A DNA stretch of 64,000 nucleotides from assembly GCF_003918875.1 (NCBI RefSeq), contig NW_025767681.1:1-64000 (forward strand). Reading direction: 5' to 3'. A program made the translations under genes and the position numbers. Positions 10,916 through 59,561 of this stretch are shown one piece after another. Each line of letters starts with the position of its first letter. Positions within the stretch are counted from its first letter, which is position 1. Under the pieces are notes generated by a model. It worked only from the letters and a program-made list of their open reading frames with translations, was not told where the DNA came from and searched no databases. Origin of the DNA: Haliotis rubra. Its lineage: Eukaryota.

Positions 10916-13201
10916 TTAGTTAAAACAAGATAAATACCAAAAGCGTGTTTGTTATCAAGTTTCTGCAATGTTGATTAGCTGACGTGGAACCAACATTTAT
11001 GGCCAGTTTTCTATAACTGCAAGACAACTGAGAACGGTGTTGTATTGAGAAGTTTACCTTGTGAAGCAAAGGTACAGACACAGAATATACAGATATAACA
11101 CCATACAGGCACTCCTGACCCGTACAGGATTTGCTACATTCCATGCTATTCTGGCTATTTTACTGACTCACTTGTGTTTGTTTAGGTATTCTCATTTTAA
11201 AGGGATGGCTTCACTTGGAGGAATCAAGCAGATAGTGTTGAAATCCTGAAGTGTTTTAAATTCAGTATCAATTTCGTCCGAAATTCTTTGAATTTTGTTC
11301 AGATGGTGGCCAGAAAACAGAATGAAAGTCAATGAATGGCATGTGTTCAAACACAAACATTTAGGAGGACAACATTTTAGTTTCGTTCAGTATACAGTGT
11401 AGCAGTATACAGTGTAATATTTTGGGATATATTCTTCAGATCCTGGCAAGTATAAGTATGATGACTGCCAACGAATAACTCCCCTCAGCATATAGACTTA
11501 GTGCAGACTGTAGACAAAGGGAACTACACCTGTACCGCCCCACGTCAGCAGGGGCAGTAGTAGTAGTAGTAGTAGCTGCTTAGCAGTTTTAAAATATTCT
11601 GTTGCGTCATAAAATTGGCAACACACCCTTAACTGGAGTTGACACAACATGTACAACCGATATAGAGTTTTAAAAAATGAGTCCCAGTCACTTTTCAAGA
11701 ACTTGCTGAAACCCACTTCTTACAACCGATTGCTTTTGAATAGAACTATTTTTACACTTTCTGTGTTTTTAACGATGTATGCAGCGTCTTTGAGCAACTC
11801 TGATGGAAACTAGGAAATCCAATAATTATTATCATTATCATTATTAAATGTATGTTCCTTATTTGTTTATTAAGGATGCGCTATCAACAGCTGGCATGAC
11901 AGTTAACACATGGATATTTATCTTCCTTTTAGTCATTAAGAAATACTTTCTGTAAGGTTCTCCACGTGTTGATGGGACAGTTTTTCTCCCACTCAAGTAC
12001 GCAACAAGACTAGGCGGTGACGTGATTGTGTCTGTGTCAGTCCTGGCCTACCCCCTTCCTTCATTCACCTGGAGTAGATCCATCAGCACCAGCCAGGACC
12101 TCACTGGTTCCTCCAGCCCTGTCTCAGACATCTCAGTCACTGCCAGACTACACCTTACTAACCTCCAGGAACAGGACTTCGGGGACTACAGTCTTACAGT
12201 GGACAATGGAGTTGGCGAGTCAGTGACATACACAGTCAACATAGTGCCTTCAGGTGAGTTGCCGAACTCCGATTTCTCATTGATCATTCAAGCTTTCAGG
12301 ATTTTCAGATAACTAGATATAACTGCCGTTTGTATGGTTTTACGTTCACGTTAGTTCCACAACTACTAAACTGCAACATTCTAACATGAAACGAATCATT
12401 TTCTGATTTATTTGTTGTAAGGACCACCAAACACACCTACACAGTTTCGAGATCTGCTTAATGCAACTTCGTCGTCGGTATGGCTGTCGTGGCTGCCTGG
12501 GTTCAATGGTGGAAAACCTCAGACGTTTCTGATTGAGTATCGTCGGTTTGCTACAAGAACTTGGACTGTTTATAAATCTTATGATGACAGAGGCGAGACG
12601 ATGGTTGTAGAAGTGACCGCTCTTACACCAGGAGAGATTTATTCATTTCGACTACAAGCTAGAAATGACTATGGGGATTCTGACAGATATGTCTTTGTAG
12701 AAACTACGACTGCAGGAGGTAGGAATCACTCTAAATATATCATGGGAAACTCGTTAGCTGCAAATGATGAAAACGTATGAATCCATTCTAAGAACAACTT
12801 CCAATTTCATAATTAGATAAAGTGAAATCCTTCAAGATGTTGGCAATCCTTCAAGTGTTAAGTGTAATGACTGAACAAATATAATTATCAAGTAAAATTG
12901 GTGTACGTATATGATTCATTTTTGTGGGTAAATATTATCACAGCATCACTTATGTCGTGGTAAATATGATTTTGAACAATTAACGAAGATTAGAACGAAT
13001 AGTTCTGCAAATATTTGATGAAGTAATCACATGGTCTTTGCAATCAAAGTAAGCATGTATGTATGGGTTTAGTTGGCGAGTGTGGGCATGAGAGACGCCA
13101 GGAATGAGCTCCCTGGAGAACTTGGGAAGAATTGCCTTCATGAATCCATGTTTATTGTACACGAAGATTAGCTGGTTCTGGTGGTGAGGGTATCGTGTCA
13201 C

Positions 13202-13402
13202 TGCTTGCCTGGTCGAATAGTTACAGACGGACGTCATGTCACCGGTACATTGACGTACGATTAGCAGGATACGTCGACTAACTGTTTCTGGTGGTCAGGG
13301 TATCTGCTTTGCCTGGTCGAATAGTTACAGACGGACGTCATGTCACCGATACAGTGACGTACGATTAGCAGGAAACGTCGACTAACTGTTTCTGGCGGTC
13401 AG
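13202..13402. repeat. ~104-bp intronic tandem duplication (2 copies)
   Basis: tgcctggtcgaatagttacagacggacgtcatgtcaccg...gtcgactaactgtttctgg occurs twice. Confidence 0.85.
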
Positions 13403-22200: not shown

Positions 22201-25200
22201 GTTTTACTACATTCGTGACAGCCACTGCTGTTGCCAAATCATAAATGACGACAGTCTGACAGTTGAGTGCAAGAGAGTCGCAGAGCTACTATAACTGGAC
22301 TGATTGGCTGATGCTCCAATCATCTCCCTGTATACACTGAACCCAGTGTGATTTAATGTGGTGTAGACTGTTTCGTTAATATTACTGATATAGTGTTTTA
22401 TTCCAACTGAATTGTCTTTTCTCTTGAAAGTGTACCGCAGAAAAGCCACCGAACCTGATTTTCACAAATTAGTTCATATTCAAATTATACCAAATATTTT
22501 CGCGGAGACACGTGGATCAAAATATATATTAAAAAGGAGCTTGGTGATTGTCAGCACATTTCGAAAACAGAATAAGCCATGGCCTACATCATTGATATAT
22601 AAAATTAGAATTTGCGAGGCTCAAATAAAAATAGATGAACAAGGTGAATGCAGAGGTATTGTTTCATTTCGTCACACACTCCACAGACGTGAACAGGAGA
22701 AAACGTTCTAACAAAGAAGGAATTGTACAGGAAGAATGAAGATCACATACTCATGGAAACGATCAAGGGAACAAATGAAAGTACAAGTGTTCCTTTATTT
22801 ATTTCGCGAATTTCACACAGGATGCAATACACACCTTGTGAAGAAACTTCAGGATCATGTATATTTTCAAGTGTTCCCAAATTCGTTTCTACGAGTATAT
22901 ATGGATTCACTTACTACGGTACAGCCGACTTTGAGGGAGTCAGCACTCAACCACCTAAAGAAACTGTTAATCACATACTTTTGAATGTGCTCTATCCAGT
23001 CATTTCTATATACCATCAATAGGCTGAAATTGTTGGCTAATATGTATCTCTTCAGACGGTCCCTACCAGATCTCCCTGACCCCCTCCACCTCCTCCTACA
23101 CTGTGACAGAACACCAGGCTCTTCCATCAATCACGTGCTCCGCCCTCTGTAGACCCGGATGTAGCTACAGGTGGTTACACAATGGATCAGTCTTCAGCAG
23201 TGGAGCCGTGCTCCAGGGACAAGCTGACAGATCCAAGACAGGCTTCTACAGATGTCAGCCTTATAATACACACGGGAGTAGTGACAGTGTTACAGTCAGT
23301 GTTGATGTTCAGTGTAAGTATATAGTCTACATTGGTGACAGTGCTACAGTCAGTGTTGATGTTCAGTGTAAGTATATAGTCTACACTGGTGACAGTGCTA
23401 CAGTCAGTGTTGATGTTCAGTGTAAGTATATAGTCTACACTGGTGACTGTATTACAGTCAGTGTTTATCTTCAGTGTAAATATATAGTCTACACTGGTGA
23501 CAGTGTTACAGTCAATGTTGATGTTCATTGTAATTATACAGTCTGCACATAGTGTCAATTTTACAGTCAGCGTTGATGTTCAGTGTACGTATATAGTCTA
23601 CATTGGTGACAGTGTTACAGTCACTGTTGATTTTCAGTGTAGGTATATAGTCTACACTTGTGACAGTGTTACAGTCATTGTTGATTTTCAGTGTAGGTAT
23701 ATAGTCTACACTGGTGACATTGTTACAGTCAGTGCTGATGTTCAGTTTAAGTATATAGTCTACACTGGTGACAGTGTTACAGACAGTGTTGATGTTCAGT
23801 GTAAGTATATAGTCTACACTGGTGACAGTGTTCCAGTCAGTGTTGATGTTCAAAGTAAGTATATAGTGTACACTGGTGACAGTGTTACAGTCAGTGTCGA
23901 TGTTCAGTGTAAGTATATAGTCTACACTGTTGACAGTGTTACAGTCAGTGTTGATGTTCAGTGTAAGTATATAGTCTACACTGGTGACAGTGTTACAGTC
24001 AGCGTTGATGTTCAGTGTAAGTATATAGTCTACACTGGTGACAGTGTTACAGTCACTGTTGATTTTCAGTGTAAGTATATAGTCTACACTGGTGACAATA
24101 TTACAGTCAGTGTTGATGTTCAGTGTAAGTATATAGTCTACACTGGTGACAGTATTACAGTCAGTGTTGATGTTCAGTGTAAGTATATAGTCTACACTGG
24201 TGACAATATTACAGGCAGTGTTGATGTTCAGTGTAAGTTTATAGTCTACACTGGTGACAGTATTTCAGTCAGTGTTGATGTTCAGTGTAAGTATATAGTC
24301 TACACTGGTGACAGTGTTACAGTCAGTGTTGATGTTCAGTGTAAGTATATAGTCTACACTGGTGACAGTATTACAGGCAGTGTTGATGCTCAGTGTAGGT
24401 ATATACTCTACACTGGTGACAATATTACAGTCAGCGTTGATGTTCAGTGCACGTATATAGTCTACATTGGTGACAGTGTTACAGTCAGTGTTGATTTTCA
24501 GTGTAAGTATACAGTCTACACTGGTGACAGTGTTACAGTCACTGTTGATTTTCAGTGTAAGTATATAGTCTACACTGGTGACAGTATTACAGGCAGTGTT
24601 GATGCTCAGTGTAGGTATATAGTCTACACTGGTGACAATATTACAGTCAGTGTTGATGTTCAGTGTAAGTTTATAGTCTACACTGGTGACAGTATTACAG
24701 TCAGTGTTGATGTTCAGTGTAAGTATATAGTCTACACTGGTGACAATGTTACAGTCAGTGTTGATGTTCAGTGTAAGTATATAGTCTACACTGGTGACAA
24801 TATTACAGTCAGTGTTGATGTTCAGTGTAAGTATATAGTCTACACTGGTTACAGTATTACAGGCAGTGTTGATTCTCAGTGTAGGTATATACTCTACACT
24901 GGTGACAATATTACTGTCAGTGTTGATGTTCAGTGTACGTATATAGTCTACATTGGTGACAGTGTTACAGTCAGTGTTGATTTTCAGTGTAACTATATAG
25001 TCTACACTGGTGACAGTATTACAGGCAGTGTTGATGCTCAGTGTAGGTATATAGTGTACACTGGTGACAATGTTACAGTCAGTGTTGATGTTCAGTGAAA
25101 GTATATAGTCTACACTGGTGACAGTATTACAGGCAGTGTTGATGCTCAGTGTACGTATATAGTCTACACTGGTGACAATGTTACAGTCAGTGTTGATGTT

Positions 25201-28200
25201 CAGTGTAAGTATATAGTCTACACTGGTGACAATATTACAGTCAGTGTTGATGTTCAGTGTAAGTATATAGTCTACACTGGTTACAGTATTACAGGCAGTG
25301 TTGATTCTCAGTGTAGGTATATACTCTTCACTGGTGACAATATTACTGTCAGTGTTGATGTTCAGTGTACGTATATAGTCTACATTGGTGACAGTGTTAC
25401 AGTCACTGTTGATTTTCAGTGTAAGTATATAGTCTACACTGGTGACAGTGTTACAGTCACTGTTGATTTTCAGTGTAAGTATATAGTCTACACTGGTGAC
25501 AGTATTACAGGCAGTGTTGATGCTCAGTGTAGGTTTATACTCTGCACTGGTGACAATATTACAGTCAGTGTTGATGTTCAGTGTAAGTATATAGTCTACA
25601 CTGGTGACAGTATTACAGGCAGTGTTGATGTTCAGTGTAAGTTTATAGTCTACACTGGTGACAATATTACAGGCAGTGTTGATGTTCAGTGTAAGTTTAT
25701 AGTCTACACTGGTGACAGTATTACAGTCAGTGTTGATGTTCAGTGTAAGTATATAGTCTACACTGGTGACAATATTACAGTCAGTGTTGATATTCAGTGT
25801 AGGTATATATTATACACTGGTGACAGTGTTACAGTCTGTGTCGATGTTCAGTGTAAGTATATAGTCTACACTGGTTACAGTGTTACAGTCAGCGTTGATG
25901 TTCAGTGTAAGTATATAGTCTAAGTTACAATGAGTGCTGATGTTCAGTGATGGTGTATAATGTGTACACTGACGACATAATTGTGTTATCGTATGACATA
26001 TAACTACAGAACTGCAAGCCTCTTTCAACTAATGTTGATTTCATTGTACAGCCAATACTATGCCAATGAAGCAGTGGTTCACATTTTCAGACCCTGCCGA
26101 CATAAGCATGTTTACCGCCAACTCTCACAGTGGCTCAGTAACAGTTAACGAGTCTGATACAGTGACCTTTAGATGCCAGATTGACAGTAACCCAAGGTCA
26201 GTCATCAGGTTACTGAATGGAACTGGAGAATTGACAAGGGCAGATAACTCCCTGACAGCAGCATACAGACTGGAGTCAGCAGACTGTAGACAAAGAGGGA
26301 ACTACACCTGTACGGCCTCCAACAACGTCGGGGCACCTGTCACCCAGACGGTGGTGTTGCTGGTTAAAAGTAATGTCTTGATATAATGTACGCATCAATG
26401 TCTTGTAATGGTTGTCATTATTCGTTTTTGACATGACTTTTTTAAGGGTATTGAGCAAAGGAAATGCTTCAGGTATCAGTCTTTATTTGAGTTTGAATAT
26501 GGCCTGTTGATCCTGTGAACGTAGAAGTATCGTCACCTGTCTAGCAAATGACTAATACGACCTTATATAACAACATCCGAAGAACGATTTCATTGTCACT
26601 GCTTTTGTATACTGTTGTCTGCATGTAACCAGGTTCTCCACGACTTGATGACTCGGTGTCCCAGCAACTCAAGTTTGCTGCTACTCTGGGTGGTGACGTG
26701 ACTGTGTCTGTGTCAGTCCTGGCCAACCCCTTTCCTACATTCACCTGGAGTAGATCCATCAGCACCAGCCAGGACCTCACTGGTTCCTCCAGCCCTGTCT
26801 CAGACATCTCAGCCACTGCAAGACTACACCTTACTAACCTCCAGCGGCAGGACTTTGGGGACTACAGTCTTTCAGTGGACAATGGTGTTGGCGGTTCAGT
26901 GACATACACTATAAGCGTAGTGGCTGAAGGTTAGTTGCCGATATGTGATCGATCATTCAAGCTTTCAATATTTTGGATAACTGTCTTTAACTGTCGTTTG
27001 TTCACTTTAAGTTCACTATAAGTTTACTTTAGTTCCACAAATACTAAGTAGTGCAAGATTCTAAGATAAAATGATGACAAATAGTTCCGATTAATTTGTT
27101 GCAAGGACCACCAGAGACACCTTCACAGTTTAGAGATCTGGATAATGCAACAACGTCGTCGGTATGGCTGTCGTGGCTGCCTGGGTTCAATGGTGGACGC
27201 CCTCAGACGTTTCTCATTGAGTATCGTCAGTTTGCTACACGAACGTGGACTGTTTATAAGTCTTATGATGACACTGACGAGATGATGGTTGTGGAAGTAA
27301 CTGGGCTTACACCAGGAGAGGTTTACCCATTCCGACTTCAAGCGAGAAATGACTATGGAGACTCTAACAGATATGTCTTCGTAGAAACTACGACTGCAGG
27401 GGGGTAGGTGTCACTTGATGAGAATCACTCAATGGCCACTCTTATTATCGTATGGAACATTCGTCAGCTGCAACAATGAAAACGTATGGATCCCTTAAAG
27501 GAACGATGTGCTCTTTGATCAGATATTCAAATGAAAGAACTCCTTCCTGGTGTGAGCAATGAACCTATGGGTTTCCAAAAAGAAACGCAAACGACCAGAT
27601 AACTGAACAAATATAATTATAATAATTGGGGAATATGTGAAACATTTTTGTGTGTAAATATTAACACAGCGTCATTGATACTGTTTGGAAATGTGAGTAT
27701 GCATAATTAACGAAGATTCGAAAAAATAGTTTGCAAATATCAGTTAAACGTGTTATTTGCTTTCAAAGTAAACATGTATGTCTTGTTGTGGTTGTATGAA
27801 CACCAGGCAGGAGGCCCTCGTGAACTAGGGAACAAATGGTCTTCATGAACCCATGCTTGTTTGTAAACGACGACTAAATGGTTTTGGTGGACAGACTCAC
27901 TGACTTGGTTGATGTAGGCTATCTTGTCACTGCATGGCGTGGTCGAATGTTTACAGCCAGCCGTCATGTCCCTGGTGTAAAGCAGACATCAAACATCTAA
28001 CTTATAACGGAGCTTTATACCTGGTACTCATCTTTAGAAGTTAACCTGTGCCAATTGTATTTTAGCCCATGATCTGCAAGGACAGCAAACTCAAATGATT
28101 AGTTTGTGATCTTGCAAAATATAGTTTTTTACTTGAATGCAACAACGTATGATAAGTAGTCAACTGCAACTGTTATGATAGTTTTCATTACATTGTAGAT

Positions 28201-31200
28201 CCACAAGCCCAGCAAAAGGTCGAAGCTGCATGTACCTATACAGGAGTAATAGCAGGTGCGACAGTAGGAACCTTTCTTCTTACCCTGCTCATTGGAGGAA
28301 CTGTTCTAATGGTGCTGTATCGTAAGGGCTACCGGATCGGAAATACTTTAAAAGGTATATATTTAATGTCGTGTTGTTGAATTGTTATATGACTGAACAG
28401 TATTTACATGCAGTAGGTCTTCTTCAAAACGTATGCTCCATGATTTTGCCTACATACGTCAGTCGTCGCGTGTCAAGATTGTGAATGATTGCGAAGGGAG
28501 TAATCTGTACTGCTAATGTTTGTAATACTATGGTTATGTTATATGTCCCAAGTAATTTACAGTTAACGTTATTATCTTCACTGTCATGTCTTTTTACGTT
28601 TGATTTTTTGTTTCTCGCTGTATGCCGTTTTCTTATTCTTGTTTTTCAGATGCTCAAAAAAGGTAACCTAAACTTCTAAGTTCAGTCAGTAACTTGCAAT
28701 AAGTTAACTACATTTACGTTTTACATACTTGAGGATTTATATTATTAGCCAATTATTAGAAACTGACCTGATGCTGTCTTGTATCTCCAGTCACCCTGAA
28801 CCTGTGGAAATGGACAACAGAGGATATTCATCATTAGGTATGTACTGATTATTGGATATTTGCTTTTGTTTGATATCTCAATATCTATGGATCTAGTAGC
28901 ACTAAATCTCTACACAATGTGTTTCAGATCAGATCACTGCTCCAGCGCAGTATTCAAATTTGGAAGAGGAATCAGAAAAACAACAGTACACACAGTTGAA
29001 GATGTGCGAGAATACAAAAGGTAGATGCATGTCATTTAATAAAGTCTAATCTCAAGTTCTCACGTGGCTGTACTGTCTGTTTATTGGGGCACTTGTGAGG
29101 TTAGTTTTAATTCTAATTTGTTTTGAAATATGTGTTCAATTATTTCTTCAGAGAATGCTGCGGCAGATACAAGTACCTATGAAGGCGTGACAGAGACTCC
29201 CCCTGTGACCTATGAGTCCATCAGGGCATCCCCATACCAGAACACTGGGGCACATCCTCAAGGTAAACAAACCATGAAGCACTCCTAGTGATTGAAACCT
29301 TCGTCATGAAAACACAGTGCCATTTGGAAAATGATCAATTATTACATACATTCATGTTATGTTTGGGATTATACTTGCTCCTCAAGTACAGATTCTAGAT
29401 TTGTTTGCTTGGTATAGAAACAGGATTGGAACCCTCAATCTCAGAGTCAGGTACCTAATCGCCAAGTCAGCAATCTAACCCAATCAGCCACCACAGTGGA
29501 AATCTGACAACTAGTAGTCTAGATCACCGTACTTTGCCGACCCTCAGACAAATATAAATTTGTAGACCTCTGCCTTCGTCTTCGCCATGGATCAACTGTG
29601 TATTTGAACCCTTTAACATGAATACACAGTGCCATTTAGAAAATGATCAATTATTACATACATGTATGTTATATTTGGGATTACACTTTCTCCTCAAGTA
29701 CAGATTCTAGATTTGTTTGCTTGGTATAGACACATCCAGGATTGGCACCCTCATTCTCAGAGTCAGGTACCTAATCGCCAAGTCAACAATCTTACCGATT
29801 CAGTCACAGCGGCTTCCGCTAAAACAGGCACCCATGAAGGGCCACCTCCTCGTGGTGGTTGCTGGGTAACGCTAAGCGCCCTTGAACCCCCGTTGTGGAC
29901 CCGGGGGGATATTAGGTCCACCAACCTGTTTGCCGTGGGTTGCGCCCCTGTGTCGGTGGAGGACGGGATTCTGGTGGTTGAGGGCAAGGGCTCCAGGAAC
30001 AGTGTTCCTTTGCCCAACACACCACTTCGGCCCTTACTTCACCTAGACGGGTGGTTGAACTGGCCCGGTTCAATCAATCGGCTGGTCACGCCGAGCCCTG
30101 TGGTATGCATTTTTGCTATGTCTTGACTCGGTATACTTGTTTTGAATACTATCTGTGTTCATAAAGTTATTTAATATTCTTGCCTAGAGCTCATGCCCAG
30201 AAGGCGGTGGCTCATGGGCCAATCTGGTTTATCCTCTGGATTAACTGGAGTATATCATTTCTGTAACCCTTTGGTGTCAGTTTGCTGGAACACCGCATAC
30301 GTATGACATCGCTCTTGTTGGCGCTCCATGGTGGGCAGGGACCAGATTTGATGAACCAATATACAATTCACTATGGGTAAACAAAATAAAAAAAAAAAAA
30401 AGGGCAACTTTCCGAATCTGATTCTGAGCTTGACTCTGATGAAGATGATGTGGTTACTAAACTGCTATATTCTGAAAGGGATACTTGGCCACGCTTTCTT
30501 GTTCTGGAAGCAAAGGGTGACCGAACACTTGCTTCCTATTCACCATTTGTGTTAGAAAAGGGATTACAAGGTAAAGCAGGTGAGTTGAAAAACGTTACCA
30601 AATTACGGTCTGGAGATCTTTTAGTTGAATGTGTCAGGAAATCGCAGGCAATTAACCTCATGACGTCAACCAAATTAGCTGATATTCCAATTACATGTTC
30701 AGCACACAAGACCCTTAACTTTTCCAAAGGTCTCATCCGTGACAGAGACCGAAGTCTCGCAGATGAATTTGTTGAAGACATTGTATCTCAGCTTAGAAGT
30801 CAAGGTGTCCTTGAGGCCAAACGATTTACATATCGTAAAGATGATCGTGTATTCCCGTCCAACACATATCTTTTGACTTTTGACACCCCGGTTCTGCCAA
30901 CTTCTATTAAGGTTGGATGTTTTTCCATGAGGGTGGATCTCTTTATCCCACGCCCTACTCGTTGTTTTAATTGTCAAAAGTTTGGTCATGGGCAAAATTC
31001 GTGTAGGAATAAATTAGCTTGTTTCAGATGTGGAGAACCTGATCATGATGGCAAAATATGTACAAACACCATCAAGTGCTTACATTGCAAAGGTGAACAT
31101 ATGGCATCTTCAACAGACTGTCCTGTGTGGAAATATGAAGCCACTGTACAGAAATTAAAAACTGAGAAACGACTCAGTTATGTCGATGCGAGGAAAGAAG

Positions 31201-34200
31201 CCAGACTACTTGCACCTGATCCAACACGTCCATCATATGCTTCAGCAGCCAAAAAGGTAACAACTGCATCTATTCTCTGTCAGACGGACCTTACTTGGGT
31301 GAAATCTGAACATCCAAAATCCCTCTCAGAGATTGAACTAAATACAGTAAGTTCCAAACCGGCCACAGATCCAGATAAGTCACCAATAAAGCAAAGAGGA
31401 ACATCTTCAACACAAACAGAGTCAAATCAAAACAAATCGTCAAAATCTACTAAAGTGGACATAAAGAAAAAACAGATTCAATCTGACAGATTGCCAAAGG
31501 CATTAAAAGACACGGTGCAATTCCATAATAAATATGGTTGGCGAATATGGATACTGAAGTATCACATATTATGTGACGCTGGTGGCCATACGCGTGGTCA
31601 CTCACCGAAAAAGAAAGGTAGAGCAGTATCTCCTGTTATTGCTCATAGATAATTACACCGCCATGAGCCATTCCCCTAATCTAGTACAATGGAAATGCAG
31701 AGGACTTGAAAATAACTTTAATGAACTACGGTTGTTAGTTCAAGACTTTTAAACCGTCGGCAATATGTCTCCAGAGACGTATCTTAAACATACTGATACA
31801 TTTGATTTACGGCAGTATAGCTGTTATCATTCATTTTCTCCTCCAGGAGATAGAGCGACCGGAGGTTCGACTATATTGGTTAGACATAACATCATTCATA
31901 GTGATGTTCACCTGAATACCAATCTCAAGCCATAGCTATTCGCCTCAGCCTGCACATTGCGTTTACTCTATGCTCTTTGTACATTCCACCCTCATCTGCC
32001 CTTCGACAAACTGATCTTCAGAATCTCTATGATCAGCTACCAAAGCCCTGTATCATCATGGGCGATTTGAACGGGCACAACCCTCTATGGGGTAGTACAA
32101 GTACAAACAATAAAGGCAAGATTATTGAGGATTTTTATATCTGATAACAACTTGTGTGTGTTTTAATGACGACTCAAACACCTATTTACATCCTGGTACA
32201 GGAACTTATTCTACACTTGATCTGTGTCCCTTGCTGATTCAAATGTCTACAACGAATTTGAATGGTATGTTCATGATGACCTTTGCGGAAGTGACCACTT
32301 CCCAACTGTCCTAAAATCAATCAAACCAGATGATGACCCACCTTTATCACGATGGAATGTTAATAAGGCCAATTGGTCTTTGTATGGAACATTGTGTATG
32401 GAAAAATTAATGACGGAAAATTTTATAAATGTATCAGATCCGATAGAGTTGTTTTCAGCTCAGTTAAATGAAATTGCTGACCAGTTAATTCCTAAGTCCT
32501 CTTCAATTCCTCACATTCGTAAACCATGGTTCAACAATGAATGTAAACAAGCAAGAAAGTGTAGGAAGAAAGCAGAAAAATACTTCCGCAGACATCCTAC
32601 AGTTCATAACTTAAATAATGTTAAAATTACTAATGCCAAGGCACGGCGAGCTTATAAACAAAACGAACGCCAGTCTTGGAGGAAATATGTTTCCAACATT
32701 AATTCGCGCACACCCATGTCTAAGGTGTGGAATATGGTCCAGCGAATAAAAGGCAAAGGCTCCAAGTCTTCTGTTAAACATCTTAAAGAAGGTGATAAAT
32801 TGATAACTGGTAAGTGTGATATTGCCAATAAAATTGGTGAAACTCTTTCCAGAAATTCTTCATCATCAAATTATATCCCTGAATTTCAGAAATATAAAAA
32901 TCGACAAGAAAAAAGAAGAATTAATTTTGACTCTAATAACGGTGAAAATTATAATGAAATATTTTCATTGCATGAGCTACGTACTGCTCTCGAGCAAGCT
33001 CATGATACTGCAACTGGTGAAGACAACATTCATTACCAGTTACTGAAACATTAGCCTGATTCATGTCTTTTGACACTTTTGGGAATATTTGACCATATTT
33101 GGATTTCAGGAACTTTTCCTCCTTCGTGGCACAATGCCATTGTAATCCCCATACCAAAACCTGGCAGGGATCATACAGATCCCTCAAATTACCGCCCTAT
33201 ATCGTTAACCAGTTGCGTTTGTAAAACCATGGAACGAATGGTAAACAATAGATTAGTCTGGTATTTGGAAACGAATAATCTTATCACAAATATTCAGTGT
33301 GGTTTCCGAAAAAACCGAAGTACTATTGATCATTTAGTGCGACTAGAATCCTATGTTAAGAATGCTCTTGTAAATAAACAACACGTAGTATCGATTTTCT
33401 TCGATCTGGAGAAAGCATATGATACTACTTGGAAGCACGGAATTTTGAAGGATTTACATCATTTCGGTTTGAGAGGTCGTTTACCTCTTTTTATATCACA
33501 GTTTTTAAGAGACAGGCAGTTTCAAGTCCGAGTGGGTTCAACCCTGTCTGATCATTATAATCAGGATCAGGGTGTCCCACAAGGCAGTATTTTGTCTGTC
33601 ACTTTATTTAGTGTTAAAATAAATAGTCTTTCTAAAGTTTTAAATGATGCAGTTGATGGATCACTTTTCGTGGATGATTTTAATGTTTCTTGTTGTGGTA
33701 AAAATATGCATACAATAGAGAGGCAGTTACAATTATGTCTTAATAAAATTCATAAATGGTGTCTTGAAAACGGCTTTAAATTTTCTAAATTAAAAACTAA
33801 TTGTCTACACTTCTGTAGAAAATATAAGCCTCATAAAGACCCAGAACTGTTTTTAAATGGCACTCCCATCAAGGTTGTAAAGAGGCCAAATTCTTGGGTC
33901 TGATTTGGGACTCCCATTTAACCTTTCTTCCGCATATTAAATCCCTAAAACTAAATGCCAGAAGGCACTCGATTATTGAAAGTCGTGTCTAATTCAAGGT
34001 AGGGAGGGATCAAGCTACGCTCCTCCACCTTACAGATCACTTGTCCGCTCGAAGCTTGATTATGGCTCAATCGTATATGGTGGAGCCTGTAAAAAGCAAT
34101 TTAAACTCTTAGATTCAGTCCACCACCACGGCCTAAGACTTTGTCTTGGGTCCTTTAGAACCTCTCCCATTGATAGTCTATATGTTGAAGCAGATGAGCC

Positions 34201-36133
34201 TTCTCTTACACAACGCCGTATAAAATTATCTCTACAATACATTACTAAACTATATTCTAGCGAGTCTAACCCTGCATTTAACTGTGTCTTTAATACCCTC
34301 TATGAGGATGTATACAACAAAAAACCTTCTCTTGTTCCGCCTCTTGGGCACAGAATTAAGCCCTTTCTTTCTGCTGCCGGCATTGAGCTTGAAAATATAG
34401 CTCCTTCCCGTCTTCTTTCTTCTCCTCCTTGGCAACTGGTGAGGCCTGAAGTTGACCTAACTCTGACAAAGTTTAAGAAATCTGTAACTAATGAATTACA
34501 ATATAAACAAGAATATAATCAATTAAAAACTAAATATAATACATACAAATCCTTATTTACTGATGGGTCTAAGGATAGTGGCGCAGTGGCATGTGCCACT
34601 GTCATTGGATCAAGAACAATATCTTCCAGAATACCGGATAACAGCTCTATTTTTACAGCAGAAGCAAACGCCATCTTAACAGCTCTTAAATATATTAACA
34701 AACACCGTAAATATAAACAATATATCATCTTTTCAGATTCTCTTTCGTGTCTTCAGGCTATTAAAAATCTTTCTTGCAAACATTCACTTTTATTAGAAAT
34801 TATTGAATTGTACAATGAACTTGCTACTGGCCAATGCGACATCGTCTTTTGTTGTTTACCCAGCCACGTTGGCATTTCTGGGAACACAATGGCTGATATT
34901 GCTGCTAAGGCAGCACTCAACAAATCTGTGACACCACTTCTGATCCCATACTCTGATTACAAAGCTGCTATAAGATCTTATATCCGTGATCTGATGCAAA
35001 AGAGGTGGGACGCCCAAGTAGGTATCAATAAATTACATGCAATAAAACCCTACATTGGTAATACCTACTTGGGTTGTCAGTCCAGATTTGAGGAGGTCAT
35101 TATGCGACGATGTCGCATTGGCCATACCAGATATACTCATGAATATTTATTGAAAGGCGACGATCCTCCGTTTTGTATCCCTTGTGATGAAAGGATCACA
35201 GTCAAGCATGTCTTGCTTGACTGCATTGAATATTCCATCACAAGGGATATCTATTTCACATCCAAAACACTGAAGGATCTTTTTAATAATGTCAGTTCTC
35301 ATTTAATTCTTGCATTTTTAAAAAAATTAGATTTGTTGACTGATTTGTAAATAGGTATATATTTTATTATTGGTAGTTTAGATTAGCAACTTAGATTGTT
35401 AGTGGCTGTACCCTCAAAGGGGGTTGACGTAGCGTAAAATTATTGTCCTCCCGAGGGGGTACGTAAGTCCCAAAACTTTCAAAGTCAATTTAAGTGTACC
35501 TGCTTTTTAATCGTAGAATAAGTGTGTTTTTAATTTATGGCTAGATATCTCTTCTGTTAATGGCTGAAGGGATGGTGTAAATCCAACTAGGGTCCATGCA
35601 GGTAGCAAATGCACTGTAAGTCCCCATGGTCTCTAGTATGGTGATCTACCTTCAGTTGTTGGCGATTTATAGCCCATTTTTACATTGTATAGTCTTCTTT
35701 AATTGGAATGTTTTAGCTTTGTTCGCTAGTTTTATATTGATAGCTGTGATTATCTAGTATTTTTACTGTCCTTCGTCGGCAGGTTTTTTATAATATACAT
35801 ATATTTCATTCTAATATCGCATGTTCTCGTCACAATATGGCTGAAATATTGCCGATGTGACGTTAAATATTAACTCACTCACTCACTCCGCTAAAACAGT
35901 CTAGATCACAGTACTTTGTGGACCCTCTGACAAATGTAAATCTGCAGGCCTCTGTCTTTGTCATCGTCGTGGATCAACTGTGTCCTTGAAACTTTAACAG
36001 CAGTAACTCAGTGTATATGCCTCTCTCCTGGTTACGTATGATACGTTTGTATTATGTCATATGTTCAGTTGTTATCATATGTTTCTTTACTTTTGTTCTT
36101 TACTTTTCAGCTCCTCAGCATGGACATGACTAA
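19222..36133 (+). CDS. Gene B: SP-V-V-Ig-Ig-Ig-Ig(Cys-less)-FN3-TM receptor with ITAM- and ITIM-like tail
   Basis: Exons: 19222-19261 (MKTVCAAVLYLMA), 19438-19776 (V1), 20519-20848 (V2), 21873-22157, 23056-23313, 26091-26369, 26633-26929, 27106-~27403 (FN3; one extra G in a G6 run at the donor relative to gene A), 28199-28354 (TM), 28650-28662, 28791-28837, 28928-29020, 29152-29262, 36111-36133 (TAA). Phases are otherwise consistent. Probable non-coding exon donor at 17917. Confidence 0.85.
23281..25950 (+). repeat. 54-bp minisatellite (~49 copies) made of exon end + donor, unit in frame (CKYIVYTGDSVTVSVDVQ)
   Basis: Unit gtgacagtgttacagtcagtgttgatgttcagt|gtaagtatatagtctacactg; first GT at 23314. 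Confidence 0.95.
29305..29810. repeat. ~313-bp intronic tandem duplication; the second copy is interrupted by the LINE and resumes at 35900-35995
   Basis: catgaaaacacagtgccatttggaaaatgatcaattattacatacat at 29305 and 29618. tctagatcac.gtactttg at 29518 and 35900. Confidence 0.85.
29827..29883 (+). ncRNA. HDV-like self-cleaving ribozyme (minimal P4) at the LINE 5' end
   Basis: P1 GGCACCC/GGTTGCT (G1-U wobble, one mismatch); P2 AAGGGC/GCCCTT; P3 ACC/GGT; L3 TCCTCGT; P1.1 CC/GG; J4/2 GCTAA. G1 abuts the TSD. Confidence 0.8.
30373..31652 (+). pseudogene. LINE ORF1 (gag-like nucleic-acid-binding protein); frameshift in the 5' poly-A run
   Basis: Zinc knuckles CFNCQKFGHGQNSC, CFRCGEPDHDGKIC and CLHCKGEH...C. 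Confidence 0.9.
31663..35350 (+). pseudogene. LINE ORF2 (AP endonuclease - reverse transcriptase - RNase H - CCHC), several frameshifts/stops
   Basis: LVQWKCRG, GDLNGH, SDHFP (APE); YRPISL, DLEKAYD, GVPQGS, FVDD (RT); FTDGSK, AEA, SDSLS, GNTMAD (RNase H); CIPC...H...C. Confidence 0.93.
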
Positions 36134-37945
36134 CGAGGCGAATGGGTATACATCACGACATCAGTTTAGGTTGCGGATAAAGAAACACGTTCATGACACT
36201 GCATTACTTTGCTTTGAGACAGAACGCCGTTGTTATCTTTCAGTTCATTCCCATTACTTTTTGCTTGCTGGATAATGATTCATATACATCCACTATTAAA
36301 AAAAACATCTACCTTGACCAGCAAGTGAAATGTTGGTTACGCTTATGTCATCTTTGTAAAATATTTAATATTGAATGCACAAATCCATGTTGGTGATTAT
36401 GTCAAAACGAAACGGAACTAGAAACCTGACCTGCAAGTTATAAAATAACTCATGATTTAGGGGAGAATGAGTAGAGCAGGAATAACAAGAACTCAGGTTC
36501 TACAGCAGGTACAGTGATAGGCGTGGGCCAGAGGAATGGCGCTCTGGGTGTGTTTGTGAGACATCATTGAGCTATGGTCGTTGATACTTACCAAGAGCAG
36601 GAGACCATGGTGCCATGGTGTAGGCAGTCCAGTCATCAGACATCAACTCCAGTCAAAGCATGCGGACCGCCCTGCACTGTCGCCCTCTCACGAATCTTTT
36701 GATACTAACCACAAAAAAGGCCGACGTAGGTATTTAGCATTCATCATCGTATACGACCTTGAACATCGTAAATGAGAGTAGCGCCCCTTGGTCCAAGTGG
36801 ATCGTGGTCAAGCACGCTAATTAACCTATGCAATCAAGTGTTGTGAGTCGTTTTGTGCTCCGAAATTGAAGAGGCTGTGCAGCTGATTTATTGCAGATAA
36901 ACCATCTGTTAAATCGTACGACATCGCACAGCTACACATGACTCGATGAGCCCATTGTTGGCTCCCCCACCTACATGTACACTGTAGAGTGTGAATAGAT
37001 TAGATTAGATTTTGTGTTGAATGCCTATAGCTTGATAATATATGTGTATATTAATACTACTGTAAAAATAGTATAATACTAGTGTTCTTATAGTTGCTTC
37101 CATTTGAAAGAAAGATTCGTACTTCATTGCCAAGTTTCACCTTGAGATCTCATTCTTTGGTTGAATGATCAATTTCTAATGATATATCTATGCACCCCCC
37201 AAGTGCCAGCAGCGTCCTTTATACAGCTGAATATCAATAATATGCAATCTCTAAGTGAGTAATACAGACAATACTACACTCGTCCTTGTTAGATATCAGT
37301 TTTATTTCAGCGCGTGTATATAATTGAAATATTCTCGTCAATAAAATAATATCAACCGGAAACTCGTTTAGTAGTAATCGTTATTACACACGATCCACCA
37401 CGACGATAATAAGACTGTACATTTCAAGTGTATAGGCCATATGGTGGAGAATGTCTTGAGTGAGACCAGTAAATGATGTACCCGTTGTGTCCATTTTTGA
37501 CGTTTGGCACAATTAAATAAACAATATGCTTGAAGCATTAATTTGACAATTTACTCAAAACAAATAAGTAGTACTTTGCATATTTATTTTTCCCTTCACC
37601 TCGGGTTTTATGTGATCATTTTCAAAACTCGTTTTCGTTAACAAACCATACACGTTTGTGTTTTCAGGTTTTGCCGTGAGCTGTTTTACCCTTCTGTATC
37701 ATATAGATAAGTATCCAGATCGTCTCTAAGGTTATTATGATTCACTTGCAAACTGAAGTGTGTTGTTTTGTGTTCGTTTCTAATGATAAACCTTGAGTGC
37801 AAACGCCTTCCTGCTTACTCACAATGGAGGAGATGAGACACATTTATATAGTATCATGTCTAGTTTTCATCGTTGTACCAGAATATGCGTGAGTAAAAGT
37901 TATTCAGCTCGCATCGTGTCATTCGGGTTAACAGTTACAAACTCG

Positions 37946-48700: not shown

Positions 48701-51700
48701 TCTGACACTTTGAAGGTGACAGTGGATGTACAGTGTAAGCATCATTGTTAGAATACTGGACATATGTGTGTACAGCTACCAAGACAGTCAGGCCTTGTGT
48801 GGGGACATCTGAAGTGAGATCTGACTCTGTTGAGGTGACAGTGGATGTACAGTGTAAGTATCATTGTTAGAATACTGGACATATGTGTGTACAGCTACCA
48901 ACACCCTCAGTCCTTGTGTGGGGACATCTATGTAGTGAGATCTGACTCTGTGGAGGTGACAGTGGATGTACAATGTAAGTATCATTGTTAGAATACTGGA
49001 CATATGTGTGTACAGCTACCAACACCCTCAGGCCTTGTGTGGGGACATCTGTAGTGGGGTCTGACTCTGTTGAGGTGAGTGTGGATGTACAGTGTAAGTA
49101 TCATTGTTAGAATACTGGACATATGTGTGTGCATCTACCAACACCCTCAGTCCTTGTGTGGGGACATCTGTAGTGAGATCTGACACTGTGGAGGTGACAG
49201 TGGATGTACAGTGTAAGTATCATTGTTAGAATACTGGACATATGTGTGTACAGCTACCAACACCCTCAGTCCTTGTGTGTGGACATCTGAAGTGAGATCT
49301 GACACTGTGGAGGTGACAGTGGATGTACAGTGTAAGTATCATTGTTATAGATTAGAACTTCCATCAAGTTTATTTCGTTATAGAAATTCATTATTATCTT
49401 GGGAGTTAAATAAATTTTCGAACAAAATTATATAATTTTATAACAGATTTACCCATTACTCCGACTAATCGTTTGTTTCGGAGTACAGTTATATATAGTT
49501 CAGATTGCAGAAGAGATTTCACACTTTAACATAATGCACTAAAAAAACAAACGCCTCCAAACTGTGATAACATGTTTGGAGATGTCTCTTACACGTCTTC
49601 AAAATGCCGACAGAAGCATGTTCTTATCACCAACATCTTGGTATACCCATACAAAAGCAAAAGCGATATCGAATAACATTTGTCTCACTTACGATGTCCA
49701 AGTGACTTTACCATTCTCATCTAATACTTTGTGCAGAACAGAAGTTATGAGGAATTATCGACTTCCATCTGCAAACCCTCAAGAGGGGTTAAAGTACTGT
49801 AAAATTATTGTCCTCCTGAGAGGGTACGTAAGTCCCAAAACTCTCAAAGTAAATTGCAAACTTACCAGGATTTTGAGCGAAGCATTTTTGTGATTCTAAT
49901 TATGGCTAAATTGTGACTACAATCGTTGGCTCCTGAAGGGATGATGTAAATCCAACTAGGGTTCATGTATCCCATGGTCCCTTGTATGGTGATCAGCCTT
50001 CAGTTGTTTGCGATCTGTTGCCCTTGTTTTAAACTGTATTGTCTTCTTTAATTGGAATGTTTTAGCTTTTCTCACCAGTTTCATATTTATATATGTGATT
50101 CCCTCGTATTTTACTGTCCATCGTCGACAGGTTTTACTCCTCAAAATGTTTTCACTTGTTATTGTATAAATTGTTTTCGTCACGATATGGCTGAGATATT
50201 GCCGATGTGACGTTAAATACTAACTCACTTACTCCATCCGCAAAAGTTTAGTCCAATAGAAAAAAGATATAAAGATGTATTAATGAACAAATAAATGAAA
50301 AAGTAAAAAGGAAAAATCTTTGCAAGAGGTTTACATGCTTTACATCAAGTGTATAATAAGTTACCGTCTATCATCACATGATCCAGTGTCCATGAATAAT
50401 GCTGTGCTACTTTTCTTCCATTTCTAAATACAATATTATTTGTTTATCAAGGTTTACACACAACCCCCATTTCGTGCAACATGTACTAGTATTTAAAACA
50501 TCTAGCTGTCCTTGCAAGGCCCGATCAACCTTGACGTAAAGCTTATCGGCAAATAAGAGTAACATCAGATCTTCAGTAATTTGGGTAACAAATACACCAT
50601 GATAACAAGCACTATACATTTCTAGGGCAAACACATTAATACAGGACATAAAGAGGGCATGGATCAAGACGCACGTTGCCTTACCCCACCAGAGGGTACT
50701 AAAACCCACATCTAGAGCAACCAACCTTTACACCTGCTTTCACTGATCCATACATACTTTTCAACAGTCTGTACATTTTACCATAACATCCTTTTCCTAA
50801 AAGTAAAGATAGCAGTTTTTTCCTGTCAACATAATCAAAAACCTTTCTGAAATCATTGAATGCACAATAGAATTTGCCTTTTGGCTTACAGAGATATTTT
50901 GAACATAATGCCTGTAACATAAATATATGGTCAGTGATAGAGTGTGGGTACATCTGTAGTGAGATTTGAGATCTGACTCCGTGAAGGTGTCATTCACGAT
51001 AGGGTATTTTAATTGATGATATTTAAAAAGGATACAATGGAAGGTCACTCTTTAAAAAAGTATTTCAACTATTTATTGAAAAATCTGAAAACTTGCCCCA
51101 AAAAGAGAATATTTCCACATAACAATATATTTATTTCCAGATGTTCATCTTGATAACGTTGACGCAATTTCAGATCCTGTCAGTATAAGTATGCTTACGG
51201 CCAACTCACTCAGTGGCTCAGTGACAATTAACGAGTCTGACCCAGCTACCTTGAGATGCCAGGTTGACAGTAATCCAAGGTCAGTCATCAGGTTACTGAA
51301 TGGAACAGAGGAGTTGACAAGGGCAGATAACTCTCTGACAGCAACATACGGACTGGAGTCAGCAGACTGTAGACAAAGAGGGAACTACTCCTGTACTGCC
51401 ACCAACAACATCGGGGCACCTGTCACCAAGGAGGTGGAGCTGCTGGTCAAATGTAAGTATTTAATTTTCAGCAACTGTAGGAGATATGTGTCAAGACAGA
51501 ATGTGATTGTCAAGATAGCATAATCATATAGCAATTAAAGGTTTGTATCTATTTAGGTATCATGTGGGGCGATGGGGGCAACATCAACAATTTACGACAA
51601 GACTGGAGTCGGAAAAAAATCATTCTTTTGATGCGTTTAAAGCAAGTATATGCTGCTCATATAAGTTCAAATTAGCTTCCAATCTTTACTATTTGTGGTA

Positions 51701-54700
51701 AACGAGCGTGATGGAGGGAGGGAGGGAGGGGAGCGTCGGCCAAATGTCGGTCCAGCTTAAAGTGAAACATGACTTCAACATTTAACGCACTTCTCAAAGG
51801 CATGAGGTTCAAACCCAGAATCATAATAGTGATGATCCCAGAATTCCAGGACGTTCCTAGAATTGGAGCACCAAAACTTCCCGAGTAATGCGAATGATGT
51901 TTGAATTGTCTATCAATTCCAACTATTTAAAGTGAGTGAGTGAGTGAGTTAATATTTAACGTCACATCGGCAATATCTCAGCCATATCGTGACGAAAGCA
52001 ATTTATACAATAAAAAATGAATACATTTTAGAGAGTAAAACCTGTCGCCGATGGATTGTAAAAATACTAGAATATCACATATAGGAACATAAAACTAGCA
52101 TGTCAAACTAAAAGATTGTAATTAAAGAAGACAATACAATATAAAACACGGGTTATAGATCGCCAACAACTGAAGATAGATCACCATACTAGGAACCATG
52201 GGAACTTACATTATTGTGCTACCTGCATGGACCCCAGCTGGATCCAACTATTCAAAGAAATATGTTAAATGGAATCATATCCTAAACGATATCATATCAG
52301 ACCATTTATACGCCTCTGTCTGAAATTGTCATTTTAGTCACTTTGTGCTCTATGATTCTAAGGTGACAATATCGGTTTTACCAGAAGTTGAGATATTTTA
52401 TACAAATATGATAATATATAGTACAGAAAACTAAACGACATTTTCAACTGGAACCCTAAACATGTGAAACAAACTTTATGTAGGCCACCATGACTTAATG
52501 TTATGCTTTTAGATAACTCATTAATGAGTTTACCAGATAAACCAGTCAGAACGTGGTTATTTTATATTTGTTTTAGAGAAGGACGACACAATTGGGGCTT
52601 ATCCAGCTAAAGCTGTTGGGGTTGTGATAATATCTAATACTCTTTCGTCTGGTCAGGTTCTCCTCGACTTGACGACCCAGTGTCCCAGCAACTCAAGTTC
52701 GCCGCTCCACTGGGTGGTGACGTGACTGTGTCTGTGTCAGTCCTGGCCTACCCCCTTCCTACATTCACCTGGAGTAGATCCATCAGCACCAGCCAGGACC
52801 TCACTGGTTCCTCCAGCCCTGTCTCAGACATCTCAGTCACTGCCAGACTAGACCTTACTAACCTCCAACAGCAGGACTTCGGGGACTACAGTCTGACAGT
52901 GGACAGTGGAGTTGGAGGGATAGTGACATACACACTCGACATTGTGTCTGAAGGTGAGAGTCTCTTGCTAACCTCCAACTGTAGGACTCACGGTAGACAT
53001 CGGCGAAGGTGAAACAGTCAGAACAGGGTCTGAAGCTGAGTGTTGAATGACCTAATCAGACTAATCCGGATTATTGCTCATGGATTACAGATAATCCAAC
53101 TACTGACCCATAGTACATCCCTCAATGTCTTCATTATCATGACTCAGAAAGAGGAAATCAAATGGCACGGTATCCTGAATATCCGCCTTGGAGTTAAACA
53201 TTCAAATACGGCAGGATAAAACGGTGCCTCTTAGTCATATCTTGGTCTTGCCATAATTGCAAACGCTACAAGACAGTAAAGATTCCTAGCATTCTCCCAA
53301 AATGCTTACAAACACAAAGATAAATTGTCACTTCCATTATGTGCATGTGCAAAATTTGAAAAACACACACGTGAAAATATGCAATTACAAATATTACCTA
53401 AACATATGAACCTCTTTGTTTTATGATTATATGGCAGAGTCTGTTCATACTCATCTTTTGACTGGAAGACACTTTTTCTAGTTGTAACCTGTGATGCGAT
53501 CACAACATATCTGAGTTCTGTGTGTAACATAGTATATTTAGCTGGGAAAACTCATACACTTACATAGTGTATTCGATATCTATGCATTACCATTTTGTGT
53601 ATCATATATGTATTTAGCACTGTATACGTAATAGCGATGTAAACATGCTCTTCTAATGACGCAGAACACGGACGGGTTGAAAATGAAGGTCATTTCAGTT
53701 CAGATTAAATACTTTTCGAATATTCTAAACTCCCAGTACTCCCAACTTCTCATATTAGAAGGAATGAGCCTCGGATTTCCCAGACAAACCTCTGAAAACT
53801 AACATAATAATTTGATAATTATTTCAGACATTCCTGCAGGAATGATGCCTGATGTCATGCAGACATTAACCCATCAAACTCATATCAATATTAACTGGTT
53901 TCCATTCCATTTATTTAGGTTCATTTTCATTCATCATTGACAACTCGCTATTTTCCACCCTCAAATATGTAATACATCACGGCATCGATTGACTTTCATA
54001 TTTGATATTTCTACTAATAGCCATGTGTGATGCGTGAAACCATTCAATGTATGCATATCGACACATAGTTCGCCCATCCCTCCATTTGATCTCTGGCAGA
54101 TAAGATTGCAACATTTCAAATAACTTAGTACATAAAATTCATTCATTGTTGAGAAGGTCACAACAACTGAATAGATAAGTTTGACTTAACTTAACGTTTA
54201 ATGTTAATGTTGTCATGTTTATTTACAATAAATTGTCAGTTGACATGTTTTCAATGAAACCTTATTGTTCTTCGTTACCGGTTCATTAATTACTTTAACA
54301 CAACTGCATGCATACAAAAGTGTAGTGTCAGTACATTTTCTGTTTCCAGGACCACCAAGCACCCCAACAAACATCAGTGTCTCCCCAAAAGGTCCCTTCA
54401 CTCTACATGTTTCCTGGAAGGAGGAGTTCAATGGCGGAGCTACTCAGACATTCACTGTAGAGTACAGCACAGATGAGGAGACCTGGAAGACAGCAGGGAG
54501 TCATACGGAGACAGGAAGTGGGAATTACTTGACATCAGTCATCAATGATCTCAACTCTGACACTCGGTACTATGTGAGGGTTGTCGCCAGGAACGCGTTT
54601 GGAAGCAGCAGCTACACTGAACATGTGACTGGACTCACGGAGAAGACAGTTATACGTACGTCTCATTTTACATTCAAGCAATAATCTCGGTACACGTAGG

Positions 54701-59401: not shown

Positions 59402-59561
59402 NNNNNNNNNNNNNNNNNNNNNNNNNNNNNNNNNNNNNNNNNNNNNNNNNNNNNNNNNNNNNNNNNNNNNNNNNNNNNNNNNNNNNNNNNNNNNNNNNNN
59501 NNNNNNNNNNNNNNNNNNNNNNNNNNNNNNNNNNNNNNNNNNNNNNNNNNNNNNNNNNNNN
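59402..59561. other. Assembly gap (160 N)
   Basis: Run of N. Confidence 1.

Follow-up and report, generated by a model that had tools for sequence, protein, structure and literature searches.

Tandem clusters of immunoglobulin superfamily (IgSF) receptors that are shaped by exchange include the KIR and LILR genes, and FREPs, which are proteins combining IgSF and fibrinogen domains, are diversified by gene conversion and point mutation. In the literature cited here, the vertebrate CEACAM, Siglec-11/16, CD300A/C and chicken BG clusters are described as tandem IgSF clusters in which gene conversion or unequal crossing-over has given the 5' and 3' parts of genes different histories and has produced hybrid genes (PMC5701461, PMC7042247, PMC2832619, PMC4046983, PMC12447643), and the FREPs of the mollusc Biomphalaria as a multigene IgSF family with exchange between loci (PMC2935394). 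Here, we report on an abalone receptor gene, gene B, which lies with the related genes A, C and D in a stretch of 64,000 nucleotides of Haliotis rubra (assembly GCF_003918875.1, contig NW_025767681.1, positions 1 to 64,000 of the forward strand), hereafter called the window. Its contig is abbreviated C2791, and other loci of the assembly are cited as contig:position. The exon under study, exon X, encodes a cysteine-less immunoglobulin (Ig)-like domain and precedes a fibronectin type III (FN3) exon.

As judged from sequence comparisons, the 5' and 3' parts of gene B have different nearest relatives, and the change from one to the other lies at or within exon X. The original prediction, which was made from the window alone, had explained B as a chimera: a C-like upstream part and an A-like downstream part were thought to be joined by a crossover inside a homogenised exon X, acting as a swap point that recombines ectodomains with signalling tails. 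The reading that we now favour, with a confidence somewhat above even, is that B is an old mosaic member of its family which arose through non-allelic exchange between tandem paralogs, and not a fresh hybrid of A and C.

Exon X and its surroundings in gene B

Exon X of gene B is 297 nt long, AG/GT-flanked and open in one frame, and its translation is 100% identical to residues 513-610 of the RefSeq models P0152 and P0003 (XP_046555515/6). Against the Pfam models it reached 34.5 bits for Ig_3 and 29.5 bits for I-set, above the respective cut-offs of 30 and 23.7, and precomputed PF07679 and PF13927 annotations were present on the RefSeq fragments that match it. The canonical cysteine pair of the B and F strands was absent from the translations of X in A, B and C as well as from 10 database copies; the tryptophan and the D-x-G-x-Y motif were retained, and such a cysteine-less variant does not seem to exclude an Ig fold. 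We propose that X encodes the cysteine-less, membrane-proximal Ig-like domain of a large tandem family of abalone surface receptors. The description first given of the exon was accurate: three copies are present in the window, none of their translations contains a cysteine, and the peptide starts quoted for them were exact.

Along gene B the order is leader, V, V, Ig, Ig, Ig, X, FN3, transmembrane (TM) exon and a tail with tyrosine motifs, and the reading frame is intact over the nine mapped coding exons from leader to TM. The tail of B (P0152), like those of P0006 and P0007, contains S-x-Y-x-x-V and V-x-Y-x-x-I motifs, which resemble immunoreceptor tyrosine-based inhibitory or switch motifs (ITIM/ITSM) at the motif level only. 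The final coding exon and the similarity to the 3' end of A resume beyond a long interspersed nuclear element (LINE) with intact-looking long open reading frames, which occupies the last intron of B. In the RefSeq isoform X2 of B (P0003, 750 aa), the TM exon is read in a different frame and the protein ends without TM or tail; it may represent a secreted protein or a decoy, or else an artefact of the gene model.

When B was compared with its neighbours, it matched C upstream of X and A downstream of it, as had been predicted. Ig exon 4, taken alone, is 96% identical between B and C, and the block around it, which includes a 54-bp minisatellite, 89.7%; the next block is 87% identical, and the Ig exon that it holds, just upstream of X (up_Ig), 87-88%. 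The match to A (69-77%) is collinear; it sets in where X begins and continues across the following intron, the FN3 and TM exons and the tail exons to beyond the LINE. Downstream of X, C is very different: C is similar to A and B solely within exon X (+/-5 nt), and its FN3 has 32% amino acid identity to theirs. The core of X is near-invariant in A, B and C, and the V exons of B match D (63162-63494, 80-82%) and not the V exon of C, both as originally stated. With A, B and C only, the MaxChi (maximum chi-square) test gave a permutation p of 0.027 inside the exon: B is C-like (18:3) on the 5' side and A-like (5:9) on the 3' side of a break that falls within exon positions 105-195.

Ancestry of gene B within its family

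Exon X is present in at least 35 copies in the H. rubra assembly, with 84-92% identity, plus nine partial copies; 13 full copies are on the contig of the window, and five, including C353:182733 and C353:148861, were characterised by identity tables only. Downstream of X, the genes fall into two FN3/TM/tail classes, AB (~20 genes, among them A and B) and C (~12 genes), whose FN3 domains share ~32% amino acid identity and whose tails share related tyrosine motifs; neither TM has a charged residue. Since up_Ig occurs in nearly all genes of both classes, the match of B to C upstream reflects a state common to the whole family. The exception is A, through loss of up_Ig; no relationship specific to B and C was found upstream. 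Indeed, A has no match to the 26091-type exon because this exon has been deleted from it: the collinear alignment of A with a near-copy, C2418:1-10000, skips ~370 bp that hold up_Ig, and the near-copy keeps the exon. Relative to this near-copy, which is 88-95% identical, the loss amounts to a ~280-bp deletion (window 11472-11563). Contig C2418 stops within the gene resembling A and may be an overlapping haplotig.

For the trees, the A lineage comprised A, g196k (C2791:195841), c2418_33k and c2418_1k, and the ordinary AB-class genes were called G2. In the up_Ig tree, the C-type genes formed their own clade (support 99/96) with B outside it, and the relatives of A (g196k, c2418_33k and c2418_1k) formed another (100/99, or 95/92 with other species) that likewise excluded B, which was placed in an unresolved grade of AB-tail G2 genes. 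In the tree built downstream of X (+298..+1795), B was joined with g196k, c2418_33k, A and c2418_1k at 100/99. It was nested there with g196k (89/93), a closeness that runs through TM and the following intron (87%), and addition of H. asinina genes gave (B,(g196k,(Hasi-1,Hasi-4))) at 87/98. Approximately unbiased (AU) tests rejected the placement of B with G2 downstream (p=1.7e-4, and 4.5e-5 with H. asinina) as well as the pairing of B with g196k upstream (p=9e-4 to 1e-5). The chimeric character attributed to B holds to the extent that its nearest relatives differ on the two sides of X; the parents proposed for it, C and A, have to be given up, B being outside the C-type clade.

The change of ancestry was then found to be divided among several places. 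A similarity profile along B showed that the best relative changes every 100-300 nt, including at the 5' edge of X and in its 3' part or the next intron. The intron upstream of X had no match among the paralogs compared save in its last 14-25 nt, and at the one locus of the genome that shares it (C353:183024-183280) the up_Ig exon is 89% identical to that of B. The first 75 nt of X in B are 81% identical to the gene sharing this intron and 91-93% identical to six other genes, the last 87 nt have yet other best matches, and within FN3 a stretch of 100 nt reaches 97% identity to a gene of the G2 group. The core of X is devoid of informative sites, and switches cannot be mapped inside it. As the nearest relative changes segment by segment, B would be a multi-piece mosaic, with switches at the 5' edge of X and within or just after X. 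Its 5' part, up_Ig and the preceding exons, would be of a "standard" type common to most genes with AB or C tails; beginning with the intron that follows X, B would belong to the sub-lineage that includes A, closest to C2791:195841. The cause would most likely be gene conversion or unequal crossing-over, which left several switches in and around X. The event is probably old: in each segment B stands 10-20% apart from all its relatives, and its identity to them nowhere goes beyond 92-97%.

These data also bear on a single crossover of a C-like with an A-like gene within X, the homogenised exon being a dedicated point for swapping ectodomains and tails. The three-sequence MaxChi result, with its break inside the core, agrees with such an event, as does the end of AB/C class homology within the last ~20 nt of X. 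In the X tree, moreover, the tail class changes at least three times and C-tail genes stand in three places. However, B is outside the C-type clade upstream, MaxChi with better-matched parents revealed no significant break within X, ancestry switches several times along B, and B diverges from all relatives by at least 8% in each segment, which implies that the event was not recent. Furthermore, both lineages joined in B carry the same AB-type FN3/TM/ITIM-like tail, so that no new pairing of ectodomain and tail was made in B, contrary to what had been supposed, and in the AB and C classes themselves the tails carry related tyrosine motifs and the TM lacks charged residues. When site pairs were compared at equal distances, finally, incompatible ones were no more frequent in X than in up_Ig or FN3, and the preferred swap point is not borne out. 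We consider this explanation very improbable; a crossover inside X remains an acceptable approximation for one of the switches seen in B. A comparison of three genes can suggest a neat hybrid; with the whole family in view, this hybrid gave way to a mosaic that is older and less sharply bounded.

Outside B, signs of exchange are widespread. The pairwise homoplasy index (PHI) test gave p<=0.001 in each of the X, up_Ig and FN3 exons of the H. rubra family. The clusters to which the 5' and 3' ends of X belong are combined as in a mosaic, many combinations occurring; in g292k and c2443_99k, for instance, the introns and the 3' end of X are as in C and the 5' end of X is that of another group. These comparisons establish that exchange between paralogs is real and common in the family, and it affects the gene body throughout, without singling out X. 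The AB and C classes share X and up_Ig but not FN3, which fits either one ancient shuffle near the 3' end of X or continued conversion of Ig exons across the classes.

An independent comparison was provided by H. asinina, in which a 71-kb locus of a HiFi/hifiasm assembly (CM074526.1:15544179-15615221, called L055) contains four intact members and a degraded fifth X copy (L055:15447). Two of these genes are of one type throughout, one corresponding to g196k and the other to G2 both upstream and downstream of X (Table 1); both upstream and both downstream types therefore predate the split between H. rubra and H. asinina, and genes mixing them do arise. A third, L055:8134, has the same combination as B, and its two parts are in strong conflict (p=1e-7 for the downstream part; p=3e-4 and 0.015 for the upstream part). 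On these tests L055:8134 is demonstrably a clear recombinant. By analogy, it renders the combination found in B biologically credible, without confirming the junction of B itself.

Several points weigh against a recombinant origin of B. A recombination-free tree, in which B is sister to the A lineage as a whole both upstream and downstream of X, was only marginally rejected, with p=0.07 downstream (0.039 with the H. asinina genes) and p=0.18, 0.077 and 0.126 upstream, in up_Ig. The groups tested were named after the trees had been seen, intron alignments between sub-lineages were weak, and some "paralogs" on C353 and C2418 may in fact be haplotigs that escaped the purging of the meta-assembly. 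B's combination was present only once in the H. rubra assembly, and X itself, as said, has no excess of recombination over its neighbouring exons. Because the groups were defined post hoc and the AU values are marginal, the support for recombination in B is graded as moderate. The per-exon phylogenies that the original prediction had proposed as a check thus gave a divided answer: the nearest relatives differ upstream and downstream, and a single congruent tree is only marginally rejected (p=0.039-0.18).

The same values leave room for a B that never recombined, as an early branch of the A lineage in which the upstream exons and intron ends stayed in the ancestral "standard" state. The other members of this lineage (A, c2418_33k, g196k and the corresponding genes of H. 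asinina and H. cracherodii) would later have diverged upstream, A losing up_Ig in addition, and the pattern among A, B and C would be differential divergence viewed through three sequences. The absence of up_Ig from A is indeed due to a deletion, the divergent upstream type is an old, long-stemmed clade in three species, and only three of the four possible upstream/downstream combinations are seen. Downstream, however, B is nested with g196k and the H. asinina genes and is not basal to them, as the trees and the constraint with p=0.039 indicate. The best relative differs between the 5' end of X, the upstream intron and the 3' part, the H. asinina gene with the same combination is demonstrably recombinant, and mosaicism pervades the family. 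We judge a non-recombinant B to be unlikely, though it deserves serious weight, and infer that B arose by exchange rather than by differential divergence.

A similar picture might also result from misassembly, if the contig had switched paralogs at the repeated ~190-nt core. The H. rubra assembly is a 30x Nanopore meta-assembly (wtdbg, DBG2OLC and QuickMerge) with haplotigs purged; this method and a heterozygosity of 1.3-1.4% make an error conceivable, as does a core repeated at least 35 times, and single-base indels in some copies may be Nanopore errors. The identical tract is, however, far shorter than Nanopore reads, and no N gap lies near B, the only one in the window being at 59402-59561. 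Neither half of B has a second copy more than 93% identical elsewhere in the assembly, the frame stays intact over the nine mapped coding exons, and the changes of ancestry are multiple and graded, with no single sharp switch. An analogous combination is also found in the independent HiFi assembly of H. asinina. An artefact is regarded as very improbable, and the old mosaic is retained as the preferred reading.

The core of exon X

The central 140-190 nt of exon X proved to be extremely conserved. Among 31 H. rubra copies, mean pairwise nucleotide identity is 95-97% in the core, falls to 68-89% at the exon ends and drops below 50% in the flanking introns; the same conservation is visible in an alignment of 11 copies from three species. 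Synonymous divergence (dS) among H. rubra paralogs is 0.058 in the core and 0.33-0.43 at the exon ends. Between H. rubra and H. asinina the corresponding values are 0.057 and 0.34-0.92, and between H. rubra and H. cracherodii 0.118 and 0.43-0.52. Relative to the remainder of exon X, synonymous divergence in the core is reduced 6-8-fold, within a species as well as across species.

These values qualify the homogenisation that had been ascribed to the exon. The core is near-identical among paralogs, as such a process would have it, but it is equally conserved between species: paralogs of H. rubra are not more alike in the core than copies of H. rubra and H. asinina, as they would be under concerted evolution, divergence from H. 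cracherodii is only modestly higher, and the conservation is trans-specific. Neutral homogenisation would let species diverge. The equal conservation between them points to a constraint that would act on the nucleotide sequence itself, beyond any conversion, or to a strong bias. The core sequence is not intrinsically immutable, for where copies are degenerate or partial and stand outside intact exons, identity has fallen to 79-87%.

Several possible causes were considered. No stable RNA structure was predicted in the core (fold z-scores of -0.11 on the + strand and -1.17 on the - strand), no Rfam family matched it, and no evident codon effect that would explain the conservation was found. GC-biased conversion was examined through the GC content at third codon positions (GC3), which is 0.61 in the core and 0.46 at the exon ends, yet 0.58-0.63 in other exons, so that this value is not diagnostic. 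As read from the sequence, the core is nearly free of CpG, which may lower its mutation rate, though hardly 6-8-fold. A tentative proposal, to which we give a limited probability, is that the core is selected as a nucleotide sequence, as a family-wide cis element kept in dozens of genes of at least three Haliotis species, for this would explain the lower synonymous divergence in both kinds of comparison. Such an element might serve as a homology anchor licensing exchange of the flanks, as a splicing or other RNA-level regulatory element, or as a common small-RNA target that co-regulates the family. The near-identical core would in any case offer a convenient homology tract for exchange; given that X has no excess of recombination, this can only be suggested. 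The conservation of the core is the more notable result, compared with the mosaicism of B, and simple homogenisation does not explain it.

The Ig exon that precedes the 54-bp minisatellite (23056-23312 in B, 46658-46887 in C, L055:6841-7069 in H. asinina) is 95-97% identical among B, C and three other paralogs and 93.5% identical to H. asinina. Like exon X, it may be an ultraconserved exon of the family.

The abalone family and known receptor systems

The family is expanded also in H. rufescens, H. cracherodii and H. asinina, and close matches are so far restricted to Haliotis. Its RefSeq names (turtle, Dscam-like, nephrin, hemicentin) vary between copies and appear to be labels of similarity, not of orthology. 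No published description of this Haliotis family was found in our literature searches.

Several features of the family were recorded in passing. In a subgroup of C-tail genes, the 3' ~95 nt of X (positions 183-277) are tandemly repeated at ~159-nt spacing in the intron right after X, with 79-87% identity to the real exon part. Five tandem copies of a TM exon, ~1.18 kb apart (C353:106801-111673), lie downstream of the gene with X at C353:112841. The gene at C2791:212697 has no FN3 exon, its TM following ~1.15 kb after X, and in all four species some members or isoforms pass from X directly to TM without FN3 (P0153, P0182, P0189, P0194-P0201). Some H. asinina RefSeq models join exons of different paralogs: the last exon of P0157 lies ~57 kb downstream, across three other genes, and the P0010 model spans 190 kb. 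Such models could reflect either annotation error from shared sequences or real read-through and intergenic splicing. In protein trees of FN3, TM and tail, AB-class parts fall into groups of species (H. rubra and H. asinina together, H. rufescens and H. cracherodii together) instead of following the paralog lineages, a clustering of the 3' half which suggests lineage-specific expansion or concerted evolution. The features discussed above are collected in Table 1.

Table 1. Position of exon X, its neighbours in genes A, B and C, the aligned blocks, and related loci in other contigs and in H. asinina
Feature	Position	Strand	Remarks
Gene B, RefSeq model XP_046555515, 857 aa	19222..36130 (3' end ~36130)	+	P0152 mapped to the window by tblastn
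Ig exon 4 of B, followed by 54-bp minisatellite	23056..23312	+	93-97% identity to copies in C, other paralogs and H. asinina
up_Ig exon of B	26090..26374	+	found in nearly all family members, both tail classes
Intron of B upstream of X	26375..26632	+	258 nt; sole genome-wide match C353:183024-183280 (90%)
Exon X of B	26633..26929	+	cysteine-less Ig-like (I-set/Ig_3), membrane-proximal Ig domain before FN3
Core of exon X in B	26708..26842 (exon positions ~76-210); high identity to ~26695-26870	+	140-190 nt
Intron of B downstream of X	26930..27104	+	matches only A-lineage genes: A, C2418:1160-1309, C353:148688-148837, C2791:196260-196310
FN3 exon of B (AB class)	27105..27404	+	Pfam fn3
TM exon of B	28198..28353	+	closest copy C2791:196820-196975, 87.8%
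LINE in last intron of B	~29827-35347		
Final coding exon of B	~36110		
Exon X of A	11957..12253	+	86% nucleotide identity to B
Remnant of deleted up_Ig exon in A	11486..11539	+	54 nt; 86% match to positions 282-340 of query 25978-26374
up_Ig exon of C	51173..51456	+	sequence match to up_Ig of B
Exon X of C (C-type tail class)	52657..52953	+	91% to B over first 277 nt
FN3 exon of C (C class)	54349..54660	+	~32% amino acid identity to AB class
B vs C, upstream	23053-24942 vs 46655-48504		89.7%; includes minisatellite
B vs C, upstream	26082-26373 vs 51165-51456		87%; Ig exon at 26090, 87-88%
B vs A, downstream, collinear	26631-27976 vs 11955-13246		74%
B vs A, downstream	28173-28926 vs 13566-14373		69%
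B vs A, downstream	28827-29307 vs 14370-14813		77%
B vs A, downstream, beyond LINE	35955-36239 vs 14804-15094		70%
X 3'-end repeats in intron, C-tail genes	C387:89354-89607, C296:192413-192507, C2584:176473-176701, C2351:434870-434944		resemble donor-ladder repeats of this window
H. asinina gene	L055:64405		counterpart of g196k on both sides of X
H. asinina gene	L055:35575		G2 counterpart on both sides of X
H. asinina gene	L055:8134		standard upstream exons and A-lineage downstream part, like B

Compared with proteins of the turtle, Dscam, nephrin and hemicentin type, the abalone genes share the combination of Ig with FN3 domains and the single TM; they also match, weakly, the Pfam model of the FN3-like C-terminal region of DSCAM. 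Dscam consists of 10 Ig and 6 FN3 domains; unlike it, the abalone genes have 5-6 Ig domains and one FN3 and occur in dozens of tandem copies. They differ from the FREPs by the absence of a fibrinogen domain, by their transmembrane nature and by their signalling-type tails; signs of somatic diversification were not found in the abalone family, though no search aimed at them was made.

The closest likeness is to the vertebrate clusters, with which the abalone family shares a tandem arrangement, a mosaic make-up, ITIM-like tails and the exchange of extracellular exons between paralogs. It differs from them in having no detectable orthology to them and no pairing of activating and inhibitory receptors: activating partners, recognised by a short tail with a charged TM residue or by use of an adaptor with an immunoreceptor tyrosine-based activation motif (ITAM), were not found, the TMs of both the AB and C types being uncharged and both tails long. 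Unlike the usual concerted evolution within a species, moreover, the conserved tract of exon X is smaller than the exon and equally conserved between species. If the core is indeed a functional DNA or RNA element of the whole family, it would open a new way into the regulation or diversification of such receptor families. With at least 35 genes and ITIM-like tails, this undescribed Haliotis family offers an invertebrate case of receptor diversification by exchange between paralogs, and extends to a mollusc the mosaic evolution of tandem Ig-type receptors already familiar from the vertebrate immune clusters.

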